This document shows positions 1-22,013 of a DNA stretch of 30,463 nt, piece by piece. Both the position numbers and the translations under genes were made by a program. Below the pieces are notes generated by a model. That model saw only the letters and a program-made list of their open reading frames with translations. It was not told the origin of the DNA and ran no database searches. The stretch comes from Prasinococcaceae sp. CCMP 1430 (taxonomy: Eukaryota > Plantae > Prasinodermophyta). The stretch lies in assembly GCA_013416795.1 (NCBI GenBank), contig RQSC01000008.1:374743-405205 (forward strand), written 5' to 3'. The first letter of the stretch is position 1. Each line of letters begins with the position of its first letter.

Positions 1-3000
1 GCGCGCACGCGGCGCCCCACGTCTGCGTCGCCGAGGCGCCATCGAGGCGATACCAGCCGCCGCCCTGCAGCGCGCCGCACGCGTAGCACTGCTCGCCCGC
101 CTGGGGCGTGAAGGTGTTGGCGGGGCAGTCGGCGCAGGACGTCAGGCCCGTCGAGGCGGTGGTCGTGCCGATGGCGCACGCCTCGCAGGTGGACTGGCCA
201 GCCAAGGGCTGGTAAAGGCCCTTGGCGCACGGCTCGCACGTCGACGAGGCGGTGGCGCCTATCAGGGCAGAAGAGGTGCCGGCGGGGCACTCCTTGCAGC
301 CCTCGCCCGCGGCGTCGGCGTAGGTCCCGGCGGGGCAGTCGGAGCACGCTTTTGAGCCAGTGTCTGAGCCTTGGCCCGCCGGGCAGGCGAGGCAGTCCGC
401 CGAGGTTGCGGAGAACGTGGCGGCGTTGTATGTGTTGGCGCCGCACGGTTCGCACTGCCTCGCGTCGCCGCCGTACGAGGCCACGTACATGCCGGGCGGG
501 CACGCGTAGCAGGAGGAGGTGTCGATCGTGCCGGCCGCGCATATCGAAAGCTGGACGGCGAGGGCGCGTACATAGCTATCGACGCCCGAGCCGAACGCGC
601 TCCACGCCGCGCCGTCCCACCTGGCGATGTGGGACGTGCCCGACACGCCGCCGGCCGAGTTGAACTCACCGCCGACGTACAGCGAGCCCGACGAAGCGTC
701 CCACGCGAGGGCGTAAACACTGCCATCAACGCCCGAGCCGAGGGCGCTCCACGCCGCACCGTCCCACTTGGCGATGTAGGACGTGCCCGACACGCCGCCG
801 GCCGAGCCAAAATATCCGCCGACGTACAGCAAGCCCGACGAAGCGTCCCACGCAAGGGCGCGTACTATATCGCCATCAACGCCCGAGCCGAGCGCGCTCC
901 ACGCCGCGCCATCCCACTTGGCAATGTAACGCGTGCCCGACACGCCGCCGGCCGAGCCGAAGTCGCCGCCAACGTACACCGAGCCCGACGAAGCGTCCCA
1001 CGCGAGGGCAAGTACATACAGCCCATCGACGCCCGAGCCGAGCGCGCTCCACGCCGCGCCGTCCCACTTGGCGATCTCGGACGTGCCCGAGACGCCGCCG
1101 AACGACTCGAAGTCGCCGCCGACGTACAGCACGCCCGACGAAGCGTCCCACGCGAGGGCGTATACATAGTCATCGACGCCCGAGCCGAGCGCGCTCCACG
1201 CCGCGCCGTCCCACTTGGCGATGTGGGACGTGCCCGACACGCCGCCGGCCGAGTTGAACTCACCGCCGACGTACAGCGAGCCCGACGACGCGTCCCACGC
1301 GAGGACAAGTACGGGGCCATCGACGCCCGAGCCGAGCGCGCTCCACGCCGCGCCATCCCACTTGGCAATGTAACGCGTGCCCGACACGCCGCCAGCCGAG
1401 TCGAAGACGCCGCCAACGTACAGCGAGCCCGACGAAAAGTCCCACGCAAGGGCGTAAATCCGCGAAAAGCCGAGCGCGCTCCACGCCGCGCCGTCCCACT
1501 TGGCGATGTGGGACATGCCCGACACGCCGCCGACCGAGTCGAAGGAGCCGCCGACGTACAGCAAGCCCGACGAAGCGTCCCACGCGAGGGCGAAAACACT
1601 GCCATCGACGCCCGAGCCGAGCGCGCGGCCATCGACGCCCGAGCCGAGCGCGCTCCACGCCGCGCCGTCCCACTTGGCGATGTGGGACGTGCCCGACACG
1701 CCGCCGGCCGAGCCGAAGTCGCCGCCGACGTACAGCGAGCCCGACGAAGCATCCCGCGCGAGGGCGCGTACGGGCCCATCGACCTCCGAGCCGAGCGCGC
1801 CCCACGCCGCGCCGTCCCACTTGGCGATGTTAGACGTGCCCGACACGCCGCCGGCCGAGTCGAACCAGCCGCCGACGTACAGCGAGCCCGACGAAGCGTC
1901 CCACGCGAGGGCAAGTACATACAGCCCATCGACGCCCGAGCCGAGCGCGCTCCACGCCGCGCCGTCCCACTTGGCGATCTTGGACGTGCCCGGCACGCCG
2001 CCGGCCGAGTCAAAGTCGCCGCCGACGTACAGCGAGCCCGACGAAGCGTCCCATGCGAGGGCGTATACATGGATCCACTCATCCATGCCTGAGCCGAGGG
2101 CGCTCCACGCCGCACCGTCCCACTTGGCGTTGTCACCCGTGCCCCACACGCCGCCGGCATGGAAGAAGTAGCCGCCGACGTACAGCGAGCCCGACGAAGC
2201 GTCCCACGCGAAGGCGTTTACACGCCACCCATCGATGCCCGAGCCGAGCGCGCTCCACGCCGCGCCGTCCCACTTGGCGATCTTGGACGTGCCCGACACG
2301 CCGCCGAACGACTCGAAGGAGCCGCCGACGTACAGCGAGCCCGACGAAGCGTCCCACGCGAGGGCGCGTACATCGGGATCGACGACCGAGCCGAGCGCGC
2401 TCCACGCCGCGCCGTCAGTTAAACGCCACCCATCGACGCCCGAGACGAGCGCGCTCCACGCCGCGCCGTCCCACTTGGCGATCTTGGACGTGCCCGACAC
2501 GCCGCCGGCCGAGCCGAAATATCCGCCGACGTACAGCACGCCCGACGACGCGTCCCACGCGAGGGCGTATACCCGGTCATCGACGCCCGAGCCGAACGCC
2601 GCCGTCCACACGTCCCCTTCATGCAGCATCGCAAAACCTCTCCCATCCCATCCCCCTCCGGCCACCGCGAGCCGCGAGCCGCTCGAGACCGTTCGCACGT
2701 TCGCGCTGGCAGGGAGGACCACCTCCACGCCCATGCCGTCGTCGGTGAAGTTAAGCTCGCCCGCATACGCCCCGCTCGTGCCGAGGCCCGAGCCGAGCGT
2801 AAGCACAATGGACACCGACGCGCCGCCTGCGAGCGATCCCAGGGCGGGCGAGGCCGACATCCACGCGTCCGAAGCCGCAGCCGTCCAATCCACCGCGCTA
2901 GCCGCATCGTTGGTGAGCGTGACCGTCGCGGTCGTGGTCGTGCTGTACGCCATCGTCTCGGACACGCTCCCGGGCGACACGCTGAGGGGCGGTGACACGG

Positions 3001-3576
3001 TCAGCTGCAGCGGCAGCCGGATGGCGTCGCCGCCGCTCGAGCCCACCACCAGCACTGCCGAGTGCGCGCCCTGGGCCAACCCCGACGCGTTCATCCGCAC
3101 CGTCACGCTGGCGCTTTCAGCCGCCACGAGGCCGCTCCCAGAGCTCGCGCCCACCACGCTCGTCCAGGCCTCGCTGACGGTGGCGAACCAGTCCAGAGTG
3201 CCTGAGCCATCCTACCGTTCGTGCGGGACGGGTCGAATGGAGGGGTCAGCGCGGGGTGGCGCGCGCAACAACTGCGGCTCGCTCGCTCTGCCCACCGGCA
3301 ACGGCGCCCTTGCGCGCGCAGCAGCACGCCCGCGCCACCTAAGCCCCCCTCTTGCCCCACGCGAGCGCGGCGCCTCTCCTTGGGCGCGGCCGCGCCGCCA
3401 CGCACCGCGTCCGCGACGAACGTCACCGCCGCCTCGGCCACGTCGGGCCGGTAGGCCGCCAGCGCCAGCGTGTCGGGCGTCCCCGCTCCGAACGCAAGCC
3501 GCGTTGTTGCGAGTGCTCCTTGCGCGGCGCTGACCGCGGCGAGGAGCAGGAGGGTCGGCGCGGCCGGGGATGGCAT
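1..3576 (-). CDS. Large secreted/cell-surface repeat protein: signal peptide, 2 BACON-like Ig domains, ~14 Rax2-like beta-propeller repeats, Cys-rich (ephrin-receptor-like/GCC2-GCC3) repeats; 3'-partial
   Basis: Exon 1 is 3576-3406 (MPSPAAPTLLLLAAVSAAQGALA..., signal-peptide-like). Intron 3405-3212 has a GTGCGT donor, a GCTGAC branch near 3245 and a TAG acceptor, phase 0. By hand translation exon 2 is open from 3211 to position 1 (>1127 aa total). It reads DGSGTLDWFATVSEAW...VDWTAAASDAWMSASPALGSL (Ig/BACON-like), then repeats WSALGSGVDGxVxALAWDASSGSLYVGGxFxSAGGVSGTxxIAKWDGAA, then CYACPPG/CLACPAG/CSDCPAGTY/CKECPAGT/CEPCAKG. The ORF track lacks it because no stop falls in the window. Confidence 0.88.
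560..2620 (-). repeat. Intragenic tandem array of ~147-150 bp (49-50 aa) beta-propeller blade repeats
   Basis: There are 13 copies of the YVGG motif (+ strand CCGCCRACGTAC near 670, 817, 967, 1116, 1264, 1410, 1550, 1722, 1870, 2020, 2172, 2322, 2525) and 14 complete xD..[VI]xA loops. DNA identity between copies is very high outside a few variable sites. Confidence 0.95.
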
Positions 3577-3960
3577 GATGGCGCTCTTTGCGCGCCGCGC
3601 GGGGGGCGACGGGCGGCGCGCGGCGCGCGCTGGAGAACTTGCAACCCTTCTTCTTTTTGGACAGGGAAGTGTCCAAGACCATCGTTCTCTTCAGAGTCTT
3701 CAGTCTTCAAGCTCTTTGGTTTCCCGGGTTCGTGTTTTGAGTGCCTTGAGTTGTCTTGCAGACGCTGAACAAGGTCGAATGAGTCTTGGATATCGAGCAA
3801 CCCAAACAGCCCTTCATCCGGCCCTTGCTGACCGAAAGGAAAGTAAGTTGCGTCGGATTGTCACACCTTCCTCAACCTTGAGTGTAGGCGGCGCGAGCGA
3901 GCTCGCGGACACGGCGCGCGGCCCCTCCCGCCCCTCGCGCGCCCTCGCGCGCGCTCCCTC

Positions 3961-4046
3961 ACACACACGCATGCACGCACACACGCACACACGCACATGC
4001 ACACGCACACACACACACGCGTACGCACATGCACACACATACATGT
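3961..4046. repeat. Alternating purine-pyrimidine (CA/CG/TA) low-complexity tract upstream of the EMC3 acceptor
   Basis: The run acacacacgcatgcacgcacac...catacatgt alternates purine and pyrimidine throughout. Confidence 0.85.
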
Positions 4047-4072
4047 CATGAACACACGCACGCGCGCCCCAG

Positions 4073-4796
4073 GAGCACGGCGTGCTTCGCAAGGAGACGC
4101 AGAGCGTCAACCCGCAGGCGGCGATGATGTCCGACCCCACGATGATGATGGACATGCTGAAGAAGAACGTGCACATGATTGTGCCGCAGATGCTCACCGG
4201 CGCGTGGGTCAACTTCTTCTTCAGCGGCTTCGTCATCGCCAAGATCCCCTTCCCGCTCACGCAGCGCTTCCGCACCATGCTGCAGCGCGGCATCGACCTG
4301 CAGGTGCGCGCCGCGCGTGGCGTGGCGTGCTCGCGCGCGCATGCGGCGCGTGCGTGCGGGCCGCGCGCGCGCGCGGTGTGCTCGGTGTGTGCGCGTGCGA
4401 GCGAGCGCTTCCGTCGGCTCGCAAAGGCGCCAAGAGATGCGTGCTCACGCATCCGGTGCCTCCTGGGCATGCAAACACACGCGCACGCGCGCCTTCGCCC
4501 CGCAGTCCCTGGACGTGACGTACGTCTCCAGCCTGAGCTGGTACTTCTTGAACCTGTTCGGCCTCCGCGGCCTGAACCAGCTGCTGCTGGGCGCGAGCGC
4601 CTCCGAGGCGATCGACGACACCAAGCTGATGGGCATGCAGCAGCAGATGATGATGGGCGCGGGCATGGACACCTCCAAGGCGTACGCGGCGGAGCTTCAG
4701 CAGATGGAGCTCATGAGGCACAGCACCGCCGCCATGGAGGGGTTCGAGGCGCGCGCGGCGGCGACGCTCGCCGCGCTCGAGCGGCGCGGGGGGTGA
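4073..4796 (+). CDS. EMC3: ER membrane protein complex subunit 3 (EMC3/TMEM111), 5'-partial
   Basis: Exon 4073-4303 (EHGVLRKETQSVNPQAAMMSDPTMMMDMLKKN...AWVNFFFSGFVIAKIPFPLTQRFRTMLQRGIDLQ), intron 4304-4505 (GTGCGC..GCAG), exon 4506-4796 (SLDVTYVSSLSWYFLNLFGLRG...TGA). These are hallmark EMC3 motifs. The N-terminal ~80 aa were not found. Confidence 0.92.
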
Positions 4797-4894: not shown

Positions 4895-5035
4895 ATGCGC
4901 GCGCGCGCGCGCGCGTATGTGTGTGTGCGCGCGCCCGCGCGTGTGTGTGTGCTTGCGCGAGCGCGTACGTGCATGCGTGTGCGCAGTGCGCGTGCGCGCA
5001 TGTGTGCCCGCGCGTGTGCGCGAGCGTGTGCGCGG
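4895..5035. repeat. (GC)n/(GT)n alternating purine-pyrimidine tract between EMC3 and ORC6
   Basis: atgcgcgcgcgcgcgcgcgcgtatgtgtgtgtgcgcgcg... is seen directly in the sequence. Confidence 0.8.
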
Positions 5036-5234
5036 GCGCCGCTTTGAGGGCGTATGTACACAGGGTTCGCATCCTGCGGCTCGGCGGCCCAGCGATTGAT
5101 CGGTTTCGCACCCGCTTCGAACCCGGTTCAATCCTCCCCTCCGAACCGGTTCGAACCACCGCAGACCGGGGAAGACATCCGCCTTCACCCGGTTTCCGCA
5201 GGGAGGGCGATCGGAGTTTTTGCAGCGCGCGGGC

Positions 5235-5431: not shown

Positions 5432-6547
5432 ATGGATGTGAAGGCGGTGTGCGCGCGCCTGGGCGTGCGCGACGCGCGCGTGCGTGAGCGTGCGGAGGAC
5501 CTCGTGCTCGAGAGCAGGGCCGCCGGCGGCAGCGGCGCGCTTGGCGCCGCCGAGATGGGGCGCAGCGCGGCGTGCGTGGAGCTGGCGCTCCGGCATCACA
5601 ACCTGCCCGCGGAGCGCACCAAGCTGCAGAAGCTGAGCTGCCTGCCACCCAACGCGTACCTCAACGCGCTGCGCGCCATCTCGAGCGCGCTGCGCGTGCC
5701 CGATGCGGTCGCGGTCGACACGGACGCGCTCGCGGTGCGCCTGGGGTGCATGCGCTCGCGCGGCACGGCGCGGCGCGTGCTCGGCAAGTACAAGGAGCGC
5801 TTCGTCCGCAAGCTGCCCGCCGCCCGCAGGAGGGGCTGCGACTTCTCGCGCGCCACGTTCGGCGTGGTTGCGCTCTTCCTTGCCGCGAAGAAGGATAAGC
5901 TCAAGGTCGACTGGCGCGAGGCGTGCGAGGCCACGGGTGTTGACGAGGACGACTTCCAGAAGGTGCACAACTCGATGCGCGACCTCTGCTACGACCTCGT
6001 GGGCGGGGGAGAGAGGGCCGGCGGCGCCACCACCAAGGAGCAGGCGCGCAGCGTCAAGCGCCACCGCGATCTCATGGATGCCACCGACTTCGAGGCTGCG
6101 GCCGCAGGCGATGGGAAGGGCAAAGGGGCCGCCGCCGCGGCGACCGCCGCAGGGGAGGGCAAGCGCAGAGCGGCCGCAGTGGGTGCCACGCGCGCCGAGC
6201 AGCCGCGGCGGCAGCACACCAGGCCGGGCAAGGACGCAGGCGGACCGCCGCCGACGCGCGCGACGGCGTCAGGAGGGACGCGCGAGCCAGCCGCCTCCCG
6301 CGGCGCGGATGAAGAGAAACGAGGCGCCGCAGCTGCCGTAGCGAGGGCGCGGGCGCACACGCAGGGCGGAGCAGGGCCGAGCGGCGTAGGGAAAGCGGTG
6401 GTCGGCGGCAACGGCGGCGATGCCGAGCGCTCGGCGTCGGTCGCTGCGGCACGCGCGCTGCTCGCGTCCGCGCCGCCGCCCAAGAAGAAGAAGGTCAAGC
6501 AGGCCAAGCTCTCCTTCTTCAAGGCCGCCGCAACCGCGCAGCGGTGA
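5432..6547 (+). CDS. ORC6: Origin recognition complex subunit 6
   Basis: Single-exon 371 aa ORF. ACVELA, LAVRLGC, YKERFVRKLPAARRRGCDFSR, AAKKDKLKVD and SMRDLCYD match plant ORC6 motifs. An Ala/Gly-rich low-complexity tail follows. Confidence 0.9.
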   Translation: MDVKAVCARLGVRDARVRERAEDLVLESRAAGGSGALGAAEMGRSAACVELALRHHNLPAERTKLQKLSCLPPNAYLNALRAISSALRVPDAVAVDTDALAVRLGCMRSRGTARRVLGKYKERFVRKLPAARRRGCDFSRATFGVVALFLAAKKDKLKVDWREACEATGVDEDDFQKVHNSMRDLCYDLVGGGERAGGATTKEQARSVKRHRDLMDATDFEAAAAGDGKGKGAAAAATAAGEGKRRAAAVGATRAEQPRRQHTRPGKDAGGPPPTRATASGGTREPAASRGADEEKRGAAAAVARARAHTQGGAGPSGVGKAVVGGNGGDAERSASVAAARALLASAPPPKKKKVKQAKLSFFKAAATAQR

Positions 6548-12700: not shown

Positions 12701-13215
12701 GCAGCGTCGGGCAGCCCTTCAACTGGCAGCAGGCATTCGATGGTCTCCGCGACGAGCTGGGCGGCGAGAGAGCCGTCTGCTTCGCCGGTGATGAGGCGCG
12801 CGTCGACGGCGCCCGTGTGCACAATGTTGTCTACAGCGCCCTTGACTCTCTGCACGCCACTGGTGTCGGTGTCAACCTCGCGCACAAGCTCCACGACCGC
12901 AAATGTGAGACCGAAGTTGGCCAGGAGGAACAGGAAGACGACGACGGACAGCACGCCGACCACTCGCAGGAGCCTCTGTTTCTGCTCCCGCGTCTGGCGG
13001 TAGAGGTTGGCCGCGCTGTAGAGCTCTTGCAGTGAGATCGTGCCCGAATTGTCCAGGTCGAAGGCCTGCAGCGCCCCCTGCAGCTCGGGGGGCAGTGCGT
13101 CGTTGTTGTAGGCCATTTCGCTGCTGTCGCCCGACATGAACTTGATCGATTTGGTCGGGGCAAGCTTCGAATCGGTGCTCGCCGAGGGCACGGCGTCATC
13201 GCCTCCGCGCCCCAT
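9793..13215 (-). CDS. Type II membrane multidomain S8A (proteinase K-like) subtilisin: EF-hand, TM, kringle, S8, Cys-rich linker, NIDO-like domain (1140 aa)
   Basis: Start at MGRGGDD (ATG 13215). EF-hand loop DLDNSGTISLQEL; hydrophobic helix VVGVLSVVVFLFLLANFGLTFAVV; kringle-like CYF..YRG..C..FCRNP..PWC..C; catalytic FDTG, HGTHVAG and GTSMATP plus oxyanion AAGN; C-terminal FYVGAQGYV..ISALYANLD..GHVY..VTY..NTFQVEF resembling NIDO. Confidence 0.9.
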   Translation of the reverse strand: MGRGGDDAVPSASTDSKLAPTKSIKFMSGDSSEMAYNNDALPPELQGALQAFDLDNSGTISLQELYSAANLYRQTREQKQRLLRVVGVLSVVVFLFLLANFGLTFAVVELVREVDTDTSGVQRVKGAVDNIVHTGAVDARLITGEADGSLAAQLVAETIECLLPVEGLPDAALGNPETALENGAADEWIFRFDADADADAAGLCAALAGYGGACTGGAEAAAASAATTGVAAATISKEGLGAFILAQRAASAGDCDAGASPFGLEAVASDSRVTAPAYHDHAHLIESHEHALSMHMRRLGEVHAQVASTSHGRRRRAALKRERSLAELPAEAKQALHAEVSKAQDAAKVRSEAKRDGDNGRALAQMSLEGGATECYFITDKAASYRGTHGTITKNGATYNCIDLENRAPALAFGGLELTSRGFPGAGLEDGPFCRNPGDLFGVGRPWCIIEVDGAVSAEICGDIPACEQSAYSTNGGPAWSKQEWAWALDRLDQPEGDITYDESTGSWKLPTDGTALTGAGVHAFIFDTGVLETHEEFTGRVGPGADCTSADIVTTQTDGNGHGTHVAGAVGGTTWGVAPGVTIHALKVLQDDGSGNTAMTARCVQYLIDNLEELTGGAPAVATMSLGSSYSETANGVVESLVDAGVFVAVAAGNADIDACTTTPASADAPMTVAAINVDDSKGLYSNWGGCVDIYAPGTGILSAYPLDAAKQPCDTCTEALGGTSMATPFVAGVAALVLEAYPDATPEEVKAYIDAAAQTGSVFGLNPAAWGGTGYEDEASNVEATANKILSVDADLWGAAKLALADQPAELAECGDDAYTQEDWDVSCPPIGSVVCGARTDEYHTDATGAPLLRPVRTGTLTCSPPLDPTTGEPTCVCAPTRPSMPVARSCAAAESDFVYLPSCGLPTGIINSTTSLEGKRLTFTPRPGGDTWSVTEQGLEFDGSAYVLPHTTYAQTGKNYAKKLRKGGAVKVSIPGGKFKSYQPGKKGKAGKVKSFKKFYVGAQGYVALGKSKKSLSPGLDTHFSNKRSAGFAISALYANLDVSMGGHVYVSKEGSKAFVTYSQVPAVSESKVSDYPGHNTFQVEFDLDTQAISVSYKSVVPLLSGRAVVGVALPKADPDAFLASSEFAQYDFEAAP

Positions 13216-13291
13216 CTCCGCGCGCGCGCCGTGGCCGCCTCGCCCCCCAACCGCCGCGCCGACTACGGCGCCGTGGCGCGCCGCCGCCGCC

Positions 13292-13408
13292 NNNNNNNNN
13301 NNNNNNNNNNNNNNNNNNNNNNNNNNNNNNNNNNNNNNNNNNNNNNNNNNNNNNNNNNNNNNNNNNNNNNNNNNNNNNNNNNNNNNNNNNNNNNNNNNNN
13401 NNNNNNNN
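13292..13408. other. Assembly gap (117 N)
   Basis: Run of N. Confidence 1.
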
Positions 13409-13601
13409 CCGCCAAAAAAAAAAAAAAAAGCTAACAAAAAATCCCCCCGGCCCCGATACCGGCACGGCACGGCGCGCGCGCATACTTGGGGTGAGAATCC
13501 GCAGAGCGCGCGCAAAGTACCTCAACATACGTAAGATACAAACCCTACATAGTTAAGGTTTGGAGCGGCGCGGAAGCCCGCCCTGCTGCGGCCGTGGTGC
13601 G

Positions 13602-13627
13602 GCGCGCGCGCGCGCGCGCGCGCGCGC
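13602..13627. repeat. (GC)13 dinucleotide run
   Basis: Seen directly in the sequence. Confidence 0.95.
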
Positions 13628-14048
13628 CGCGCCGCGCGGGGGAACCGAGCGCCATCAAATCGAATGCGTCGTCTGCCGAGCCTATTCGAACTGATCTGGG
13701 AGAGGCGCTTCACCAAATAGAATCTAATGCATGCGGATACAATGCGATCTGATGGAGGAAAAGAAAGCCATCAAAGTGAAAGCGTGGTCTGCGGAGCAGT
13801 CAGATCGCAGTGGATGCGCGATCGCGCCCCCTCGCAACGCGTCAGATAGACCCGTTTTTACGATAACCGTAAATATATTAAACCGGAAGGCGGGACGGAC
13901 GTAGCGCCGCGGCGGGAGCGACTGCGCGGTGCAGTGCCGGACGGCGCGCGCGAGGACGCCCCCCCCATGGGCGGCGCGGCGTCCTCCCTTGCCTCGGAAG
14001 GTGGGGGGTGCCCCGCATGCCTGAGGCCCGGGGTGGGCGCGGCTCCTC

Positions 14049-20308: not shown

Positions 20309-21147
20309 CCCTCCCCGTTTCCTCGGCCGCGGCGCCCGTCCCGTGCGCGCCCCGCCGCGCTGCTCACCCCCTCCCGCTCCCCCGCGCGCCGCTCGCCGGC
20401 CGCGCCTGCGCCGGCCCCTGGGAAATTCCCGCCTCTCCCCGGACGGTCAGATACCGGACGCGATCCGGCGCCGCACCGCCACGCGCGCGCAGTGTGGCGC
20501 GCCCCGCCACTCGACATCTCCACATCCCCCACCCCTACCCCTCCCGACACACACACACACACACACACACACACCACCCCCTACCCTTGCGCCCCCCCTC
20601 CACACACCACACACACACCACCCCCTGCCCCGGCGCCGCTACGGCAGCAGCGGCAGCTTCCGGCCCTTGCCGGGGCCTGCCCAGGTGGCGCGCCCCTTCG
20701 CACCAACCTCGCGTCGTCCGTGCCCCTTCGCAACAAAACGCGCGCGCGCGGGTGCATTTTGCTAATAAAAAACGGATGAGGAATGTCAAATGCGAGCGCG
20801 AGAGGGAAAGGAAGCGAGCCGCGAGGCGAGGGCAGGGCGCGTTTCGGCGGAATTGCGCGCGGTCGAATCTCAAACCGTCAAACGGGTCGAGAGAATTTTT
20901 GGAGGCCTGCCAAGCACCTGTGTTTCAATGCATTCATCTTGAGCTCATCGTCACCAACGGGAGACTTTTCCCGTGGCGTGTGTTTTGATGTGTGTGTGTG
21001 GGTACGCACACGTTGGTCGTGTGCGCCCGTCGGGTGCGCGCGCGCCCCTTCGCGCGCCCCTTCGCGCGCCGCGCGCGCGCGCGCGGGGGCTTCCGGAAGC
21101 TCCTGTCGCAACCCTCCAAAGCGCGGTTCTGAACGGGTTCCCCCACG

Positions 21148-21213
21148 TTTTTTTTTTTTTTTTTGGATGCCGCCTGCCTTACGCCAATCGTCGCGAGCCG
21201 CGGCGCCGCTTGC

Positions 21214-21267
<54 letters not shown>

Positions 21268-21320
21268 GATGTGGGTAGGTGGGCGGGTGTGGTGGAGAGC
21301 TGCCCGCGGCGCCGCTTGCG

Positions 21321-21355
<35 letters not shown>

Positions 21356-21490
21356 AATTTTCATTGCATTTTATTTTTTGTGGATGCCTCCTCGCTTTCC
21401 CTTTTCGTCGTGAGCCGCGGCGTCGTTTGCGCTGCATTTTTATTTTTATTTTTATTTTTGCTGCCGCGGCTTCGCTGCGTTTTTATTTTT
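21148..21490. repeat. Poly-T tracts (T17, T51, T29) separating three related 50-54 bp GGATG...CCGCGGCGYCGYTTGCG units
   Basis: Units at 21165-21214, 21267-21320 and 21382-21431, with a partial fourth at 21463-21479. Confidence 0.85.
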
Positions 21491-21952
21491 GTTTTATGTG
21501 GGTTTTATGACCGTTTTATTTTTCATATTGTGGAACGAAAACATCCATCTGCAAATATGTGTACTGTATTGGAATCTATGAGACCGCGTTTCGCGGTGTC
21601 GAATTTCCGCCTTTTTTTTAGGCGACGGCGGCGGGAAAGGGGCGTGCGCACGCGCGCGTTGCGGCGATCGGCCGCGCGGCCGATCGGCGCGGCGCGCGCG
21701 GACCCCCGGTGAAGCCCCCATTTCGCATCTGAAATATAAATCAACATGATATCACAAGTACTATTTTTGGAGGGAGTTTGTTACGTCGATTGTCGGGGCA
21801 AGCAAAGGGGCGCTTTCGCTTCCCCCGTCGTGTGGCGCGATTCGAATTCGCGGCGACGGAATTCGGCGCGCGGCGGCCGCGCGGCGGCGCCGCGGGACGC
21901 ATCTAAACGAATGGCGCGACTTTCCGCCGGGGGCGCGCGCGGGAAAAGCGCG

Positions 21953-21966
21953 GTGTTCTAGAACAC
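21953..21966. promoter_or_regulatory. Heat-shock-element core in a 14-bp palindrome (GTGTTCTAGAACAC) upstream of HSP70
   Basis: Contains nTTCnnGAAn, the established HSF-binding inverted pentamer pair, directly 5' of the HSP70 gene. Confidence 0.65.
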
Positions 21967-22013
21967 GCGCGCGGCGCGCGTGGCGGAGAGCTCCCGGCTC
22001 ACCTCTGCCAGCC

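Follow-up and report, generated by a model that had tools for sequence, protein, structure and literature searches.

The window analysed here is a stretch of 30,463 nucleotides from Prasinococcaceae sp. CCMP 1430 (assembly GCA_013416795.1, contig RQSC01000008.1, positions 374,743 to 405,205), and its minus strand encodes, close to position 1, a tandem array of highly similar beta-propeller blades (554–2620). Within each blade a nearly fixed scaffold is combined with a few strongly variable positions. This pattern is probably the outcome of concerted evolution of the blades together with selection at approximately eight codons per blade, acting on the ectodomain of a receptor-like protein, secreted or at the cell surface, in this 70%-GC alga. 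The pattern is not special to the algal gene but is a trait of its protein family, which numbers at least 37,847 cluster representatives. Exchange between blades, by short-tract gene conversion and by unequal recombination, would maintain a uniform scaffold, even in its codon choice, and would also carry loop "cassettes" from blade to blade, and selection would keep or promote differences between blades at the eight or so codons. On a rigid and nearly symmetric scaffold, the blades could then each present their own patch of aromatic and charged residues, all on one face. Such a design is that expected for a large multivalent or asymmetric binding surface, and the variable face presumably binds a ligand.

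Composition and mosaic history of the blade array

The array was delimited by repeat splitting, Tandem Repeats Finder (TRF) and the family model PF12768. Splitting at the DGAAW motif yields 13 full units (u0 and u2 to u13) of 46 to 58 amino acids each and two partial units (u1 and u14). TRF reports one array at 558–2416 with periods of 150, 297 and 459 and scores of approximately 2000, and a 36-nt scaffold pattern occurs 13 times in the array versus 0 times in shuffled sequences. A preliminary description of this DNA had listed 14 variable loop strings, 13 strings following the motif YVGG and seven dipeptides, all of which read exactly so in the sequence; its inventory of the array, however, missed two elements. 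The first is u1, an in-frame fragment consisting of the first 18 codons (54 nt) of a u3-like blade (2417–2470, minus strand). Its DNA is nearly identical to the start of u3, and the fragment is best seen as a scar of unequal recombination. An intron was rejected as an explanation of u1, as no in-frame GT..AG pair fits and the fragment is far shorter than the 194-nt intron of the gene. The second element lies in the D-A loop of u7, where 27 bp (ALGSGVDG-R/S) are exactly duplicated in tandem (1601–1653, minus strand; TRF 2.0 copies, 100% match).

The mean pairwise blade identity in the algal array is 0.78. The scaffold is nearly fixed, its synonymous codons are column-specific (GCG versus GCC for alanine; AGC, TCG or TCC for serine), and a rare GTA codon is kept in 11 of the 15 units. 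Because synonymous codon choice is column-specific, the uniformity of the scaffold reflects shared descent and not codon bias. To call the blades near-clonal and almost invariant even at synonymous sites was nevertheless too strong, as units differ pairwise at 10 to 34 of approximately 147 nt (7–23% of bases) and synonymous diversity across the array is 0.15–0.18 per site. The variation is focused, as had been stated, at a few positions, namely alignment columns 15, 16, 25, 27, 43, 45, 54 and 55 (the hot columns), with lesser variation at columns 37 and 47. Residues at the hot columns are 29% aromatic and 34% charged, compared with 13% and 10% in the scaffold, in agreement with the reported richness in tryptophan, tyrosine, phenylalanine and charge. 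The accompanying claim of A/T-rich codons is weak: G+C content at third codon positions (GC3) is 0.81 in hot codons versus 0.885 in the scaffold, and the lower G+C content at the first two codon positions is a consequence of the amino acids encoded. For the same reasons, A/T codons were rejected as a sign of recent mutation or hypermutation.

Stop-free open reading frames (ORFs) of 200–570 amino acids in wrong frames overlie the array on both strands (352–3533); they are by-products of the 70%-GC repeat and could mislead gene callers. The plus-strand and other minus-frame ORFs over the array (573, 431 and 432 amino acids) were dismissed as stop-poor, GC-rich repeat frames without a repeat motif or family match.

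DNA alignment of the units revealed identical patches, including synonymous variants, that are common to non-adjacent blades. Loop 1 is shared by u5 and u11, columns 42–47 by u6 and u11, columns 40–56 by u8 and u11, columns 42–55 by u9 and u13, and columns 42–45 by u0 and u12. Blade u11 is a three-way mosaic of u5, u6 and u8 patches. No single tree accommodates 176 of the 406 informative site pairs (43%), and compatibility is higher between neighbouring than between distant sites (pairwise homoplasy index permutation, p = 0.0016). The mosaicism, the u1 fragment and the perfect 27-bp duplication point to ongoing gene conversion and unequal recombination rather than to one clean amplification. 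The suggestion that the array was recently amplified is therefore not borne out; a recombinant mosaic with moderate synonymous divergence fits ongoing concerted evolution.

Diversity, location and family-wide recurrence of the hot columns

Since choosing hot columns from the query itself would be circular, those used for testing were defined from the within-protein blade entropy of 107 homologues. Homologue entropy peaks at hidden Markov model positions 15, 34, 18, 46, 42 and 14, corresponding to query columns 16, 43, 27, 55, 51 and 15, and the variability profiles of query and family are correlated (Spearman 0.58, p approximately 1e-5). Nonsynonymous diversity (piN) in the query is 0.487 at these six pre-chosen columns and 0.615 at the top three, versus a synonymous diversity (piS) of 0.155 at all other columns (bootstrap 95% confidence interval 0.10–0.21; largest value in 10,000 resamples 0.27). 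The uncorrected piN at the pre-chosen columns is 3–4 times piS, and the Jukes-Cantor-corrected ratio is approximately 4.5–7. Mean diversity at positions 1 and 2 of hot codons is 0.48 versus 0.13 at four-fold sites, and hot and synonymous diversity differ significantly (Mann-Whitney p = 0.001). Diversity-based tests were used in place of tree-based dN/dS (of the fixed effects likelihood type) or likelihood site models, which were avoided because 43% of the informative site pairs are incompatible. The proposal that the variable sites are under diversifying selection is supported to the extent that, by such a test, their nonsynonymous diversity exceeds the synonymous level at columns chosen beforehand from homologues.

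The same excess was found at the DNA level in four distant homologues, bacterial or metagenomic and of 45–65% G+C content, with piS of 0.33–0.44 and piN of 0.61–0.68 at four hot positions; on the same measure the query has a piS of 0.17 and a piN of 0.57. The regime is family-wide, and the algal gene represents its most homogenised case. The hot-site excess is more probably caused by selection than by local hypermutation.

The location of the hot columns was assessed on an AlphaFold2 (AF2) model of amino acids 190–890, built from a 71-sequence alignment. The model has a mean predicted local distance difference test (pLDDT) score of 86.9 and a predicted template modelling (pTM) score of 0.60, and each unit has four strands in it; low confidence is confined to the N-terminus, the u1/u2 junction (pLDDT <50, model residues 75–85) and a dip at the u7 duplication. 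Units u0 and u2–u7 form a first, seven-bladed propeller (amino acids 207–576; 1484–2593, minus strand). Model residues 18–387 match single seven-bladed WD40 propellers with a Z score of approximately 29 and a root-mean-square deviation of 2.4–2.7 Å over approximately 280 residues. The second propeller (554–1483, minus strand), recognised by its match to Protein Data Bank (PDB) entry 2ymu, holds six full units (u8–u13) and the fragment u14. Thus, of the double seven-bladed propeller proposed earlier, the tandem arrangement and the seven blades of the first half stand, whereas the second half has only six full units and a fragment. In a Foldseek comparison, the best match to the whole model was the 14-blade 2ymu (TMq 0.53; aligned over 15–701), followed by the BT4663/BT4673 sensor double propellers and glycoside hydrolase family 74 (GH74) enzymes. 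No chain matches the algal propeller in a PDB sequence search.

Applied to the unit alignment, DSSP places strand D at columns 5–8, A at 25/26–32, B at 37–43 and C at 56–59, with B extending to column 47 in four units. The connections of a four-stranded meander alternate between its two faces, with D-A and B-C at one and A-B and C-D at the other. By this topology, all strong hot columns fall where strand A or C begins or strand B ends, on the D-A/B-C face, and the A-B (DASSG) and C-D (WDGAAW) loops of the opposite face are constant. Where the loop of a unit is longer by one residue, its strands A and B extend into a protruding hairpin made mostly of hot residues. As mapped on the model by strand topology, the strongly variable sites would share one face, as the preliminary description had anticipated, and the hot residues are predicted to be surface-located there.

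Relatives of the propeller are abundant, with at least 7800 matches among 8000 candidates scored and at least 37,847 cluster representatives at E ≤ 0.001. The best identity of any relative is 58–61%, and homologues are 39–61% identical to the query over the whole array. The few relatives named by their sources are bacterial, from Bacteroidota, Verrucomicrobiota, Planctomycetota and a Syntrophobacteraceae genome, and one is sorted by the type IX secretion system (T9SS). Many homologues are annotated as DUF5122, and one (P0017) has a weak Ephrin_rec_like match. They typically comprise 12–14 units of the design WDGxxWSALGxG..V.ALA...LY.GG.F..AGG....IAKW and are hypervariable at the positions of the query. 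Each protein has its own scaffold signature, such as ALAVSGSDLYAGG, ALAVDSSGNLYAGG or ALAVVGSDLYVGG in homologues versus ALAWDASSGSLYVGG in the algal gene. Pairwise blade identity in the homologues listed has a median of 0.57 and a maximum of 0.75, compared with 0.78 in the alga. Column 45 is an extra variable site in the alga; the corresponding position after GGxF is usually threonine in homologues. The genomic surroundings of two homologues were also noted: on one metagenome contig (L001, carrying P0005) the bacterial gene, which fuses a propeller of 13–14 units with an FGE-sulfatase domain, is a neighbour of a Ser/Thr kinase gene, and another homologue (L005) adjoins a BTAD/NB-ARC/TPR gene of the STAND type.

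Strain comparison and alternative explanations

The window was compared with 20 public sequencing runs from 16 studies under two organism labels, in which 61–76% of the sampled words are present. The runs were used as Logan contigs, whose length over the array is approximately 100–330 nt, with more than half of the placed contigs fitting two places. Unitigs were compared in four runs from four studies, covering both organism labels. Unitigs matching the window with 0–1 difference lie at 537–651, 1044–1162, 2489–2607, 2659–2930 and 3086–3411 and cover the u0, u10 and u13/u14 loops and the intron. At loop 1 of u2 (2367–2375), the sole unitig in two runs of organism B (X10 and X18) reads PKVHA versus PDVRA in the window. 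This replacement comprises four changes in 9 nt between identical flanks of 31–39 nt, and approximately 950 nt of unique unitigs near it match with 0–1 difference, including a 326-nt intron-covering unitig with none. A comparable replacement unitig was found at loop 1 of u5 (1913–1926) in one run (X4). These replacement unitigs, of approximately 70–150 nt, may represent either alleles or parts of a similar gene at another genomic site.

Two further features emerged from the unitigs. At 2830–3079, the BACON-like region, all four runs contain several alternative unitigs with many differences from the window and at partial to majority depth, suggesting that the genome has further, paralogous BACON-like copies. 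A unitig joint from 436 to 3027, skipping 2590 nt, is present in three of the four runs.

Several observations weigh against concerted evolution with selection in a receptor-like ectodomain. Uniquely placed unitigs in the four runs equal the window or differ by one base, giving no sign yet of allelic diversification, and none of the 20 runs is recorded as RNA. The diversity test is not a recombination-aware site model, and a raised local mutation rate would yield the same excess; synonymous diversity is itself raised inside hot codons, 0.38 versus 0.15, although the former value is inflated by path averaging in the Nei-Gojobori (NG86) method. Beside the hot columns synonymous diversity is not significantly higher (Spearman -0.22, p = 0.19), so that the expected signature of long-maintained differences under conversion is not seen. 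The placement on one face follows from the beta-meander topology of the AF2 model and not from measured exposure or clustering, and the moderately variable column 37 sits at the opposite face.

A stronger version, in which the protein is an arms-race receptor for a virus, bacterium or glycan, with population-level diversifying selection and isolates differing in loop alleles and repeat number, appears rather unlikely. The ingredients of the model known from the fungus Podospora (discussed below) are present, namely concerted evolution, cassette reshuffling and an excess at surface sites, and the replacements at u2 and u5 provide one hint of loop alleles. However, the variant unitigs are short and could derive from a similar gene at another locus, over half of the placed contigs fit two places, and in the runs compared the hot loops of u0, u10 and u13/u14 match the window with 0–1 difference. 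Moreover, word-indexed and representative protein searches retrieved no orthologue of more than 61% identity, and two metagenome scans retrieved no environmental copy.

Relaxed constraint alone, with the hot surface-loop columns drifting freely and the scaffold held by folding, is improbable. The same columns are the least conserved family-wide, as expected of unconstrained loops, and piN/piS over the whole array is 0.76, below 1 (approximately 0.5–0.6 in the scaffold). Neutral sites, however, cannot exceed the synonymous level, yet the pre-chosen columns do so 3–4-fold, in five of five genes. Conversion tracts also carry hot columns along, so neutral hot sites would be homogenised with their neighbours.

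We hold it very improbable that targeted or local hypermutation created the hot spots without selection, whether by a process resembling diversity-generating retroelements (DGRs), by repeat-induced mutation or through loops prone to indels and slippage. Loop 1 does vary in length and carries the slippage duplication, synonymous diversity is higher within hot codons, and many hot codons differ at two or three bases. Against this, substitutions of all classes occur at the hot sites (strong to weak 20, weak to strong 11, strong to strong 10, weak to weak 5), unlike the single-base signature of DGRs or repeat-induced point mutation (RIP), and columns 43, 45 and 55 are free of indels. The same amino acid positions are hot in homologues of 45–65% G+C content from unrelated organisms, which points to the protein and not to a DNA motif. 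A DGR target was also rejected on the grounds that all substitution classes occur and that the gene is eukaryotic and intron-bearing, although no search aimed at a reverse transcriptase or template repeat was made.

Finally, a collapsed or chimaeric assembly of several paralogous repeat genes is hardly credible: although 150-bp repeats are hard to assemble, an odd blade fragment and a 27-bp duplication are present, no listed run exceeds 76% of sampled words and the unitigs are short and multi-mapping, no stop interrupts the frame over 3.2 kb, of which 2.1 kb are repeats, no two units are identical, their number agrees with the 13–14 of homologues, and unique unitigs of independent runs match the window at 537–651, 1044–1162 and 2489–2607.

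Gene layout, known analogues and significance

The repeats lie in exon 2 (2–3211, minus strand), one open frame of 1070 codons that runs past the window start; the C-terminus of the protein is beyond the window start, and any membrane part would lie outside the window. Exon 1 (3406–3576, minus strand) was read directly from the sequence; it begins with an ATG at 3576, comprises 171 nt (57 codons, phase 0) and ends before GTGCGT. The two are separated by a predicted 194-nt GT..AG intron with a pyrimidine-rich 3' end (3212–3405, minus strand). This intron was deduced from a TAG acceptor directly upstream of the long frame and from the joining of the exons, which keeps the frame and completes a BACON-like domain.

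Exon 1 starts with a hydrophobic, signal-peptide-like N-terminus, MPSPAAPTLLLLAAVSAAQG, followed by the beginning of a BACON-like immunoglobulin (Ig) domain; this N-terminus is a putative signal peptide, judged by eye rather than by a predictor. Exon 1 alone has no match in a Pfam scan. Amino acids 76–151 of the exon-2 translation (2759–2986, minus strand) form a BACON_2-type Ig-like domain (PF19190, E 1.3e-9, 38.3 bits versus a cut-off of 25). The array matches the Rax2 C-terminal propeller (PF12768) in four stretches, with 98.6 bits versus a gathering cut-off of 28.8. Cys-rich ephrin-receptor-like or TNFR-like repeats follow the propeller at the C-terminal end (2–541, minus strand), with three stretches matching PF07699 (E 2.6e-19) and a weak match to PF23091. 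In the same scan the DUF5122 repeat (PF17164) scored 17.5 bits, below its gathering score of 27, and no WD40 family matched the algal protein; its resemblance to WD40 propellers is purely structural, at 10–20% identity. An NCBIfam search of the protein matched nothing. Overall, the protein would consist of a signal peptide, a BACON-like Ig domain, two tandem Rax2-type propellers of four-stranded blades and ephrin-receptor-like Cys repeats, in this order.

The window has a G+C content of 67–77%, with CA/GT-type microsatellites and intron-containing eukaryotic genes. An exon at 4082–4306 (plus strand) encodes an EMC3/TMCO1-like membrane protein domain (PF01956, E 1e-20); the EMC3 gene is evidently split by introns, which hold GC-rich microsatellites. 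Imperfect CA/CACG and GCGTGT-type microsatellites (TRF periods 6–26), typical of eukaryotic non-coding DNA, lie on either side of this exon at 3960–4061 and 4897–5039. An ORC6 homologue with ORC6 and ORC6_2nd cyclin-like domains and a long low-complexity tail rich in alanine, glycine and lysine is encoded at 5432–6547 (plus strand). Two 1-kb bins, 21001–22000 and 13001–14000, have a G+C content of 0.55–0.57 versus a background of approximately 0.70, and the former has an AT skew of -0.43.

The closest analogues of the algal array are the WD40 repeats of "high internal conservation" in the fungal HET-D, HET-E and NWD proteins (PMC1805685; Chevanne et al., 2010, PMC2873952). The WD40 repeats of the Podospora het-d, het-e and NWD genes are under concerted evolution, with four residues per repeat positively diversifying on the interaction surface (Paoletti, Saupe and Clave, 2007, PMC1805685). 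Both systems combine blades kept near-identical by concerted evolution, exchange and reshuffling of repeats, and a nonsynonymous excess at a few codons per repeat. The selected codons of the fungal proteins lie on the interaction face, and strand topology would likewise place the strong hot columns of the alga on a single face, that of the D-A and B-C loops. The algal protein differs in having Rax2 (PF12768) blades and a predicted extracellular setting with signal peptide, BACON and Cys-rich parts, whereas the fungal proteins are cytoplasmic NACHT/STAND proteins with WD40 repeats. The alga also shows no RIP, and the fungi show inter-locus exchange, repeat-number polymorphism and allelic hypervariability. 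A NACHT/STAND architecture, as in NOD-like receptors (NLRs), was not found, the Pfam scan giving BACON_2, Rax2 and Ephrin_rec_like only. By analogy, the algal array would work like the Podospora arrays, and it is not a member of the NWD family or of the NLRs.

Highly repetitive beta-propellers have been characterised by more than 60% pairwise blade identity and explained by fresh amplification from a single blade (Pereira and Lupas, 2022, PMC9218822). With 78% pairwise blade identity, the algal array falls within this class. It resembles the WRAP domain of Nostoc Npun_R6612 (PDB 2ymu), which has 14 units in two tandem propellers and is the best whole-model match. However, WRAP lacks synonymous differences, whereas the algal blades are recombinant mosaics with a piS of 0.15–0.18. 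Text searches of PMC9218822 for Rax2, DUF5122, hypervariable positions and concerted evolution were negative, and a library search on DUF5122, PF12768 and PF17164 retrieved a single structure-prediction paper only.

Bacterial and metagenomic surface proteins of the Rax2/DUF5122 type (T9SS-sorted, Ig-like, cadherin-like; P0005, P0019, P0021 and P0032) share the unit design, the hypervariable positions and the hot-site excess. They differ from the algal protein in their prokaryotic context, in their other flanking domains and in their less homogenised blades (piS 0.33–0.44). Bacteroides hybrid two-component sensors (BT4663, PDB 4a2l/4a2m) and GH74 xyloglucanases, which rank high in Foldseek, are also tandem seven-bladed propellers and recognise carbohydrates outside the cytoplasm; this resemblance is one of fold only, with TM-scores of 0.3–0.4 and 10–18% identity.

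The algal gene on its own reveals no new mechanism. The main value of the finding lies in the recurrence of the pattern throughout a very large family of surface propellers without a described function. The candidate binding residues in each blade are the two or three before the V, the one after it, the two flanking the F that follows GG and the pair preceding IAKW, and the array offers a natural template for the design of consensus-propeller binders. If the reading of concerted evolution with selection holds, the gene is a clean example of homogenisation by conversion and selection for differences jointly building a binding surface from near-identical modules, and it carries the regime of the fungal intracellular WD40 receptors over to another propeller family, to an algal receptor outside the cell and, judged by the family-wide analysis, to very many surface proteins of bacteria. 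More speculatively, and with low confidence, the Rax2/DUF5122-type double propeller might be a widespread binder platform of "constant scaffold plus programmable loops", in which conversion shuffles cassettes between blades, and perhaps paralogues, selection diversifies three top-face positions, and a family of extracellular receptors in this alga acquires rapidly evolving specificity for viruses, bacteria, mates or glycans. If so, the fungal NLR repeats of high internal conservation would have an extracellular counterpart, and tens of thousands of surface proteins from bacteria and protists would contain it.

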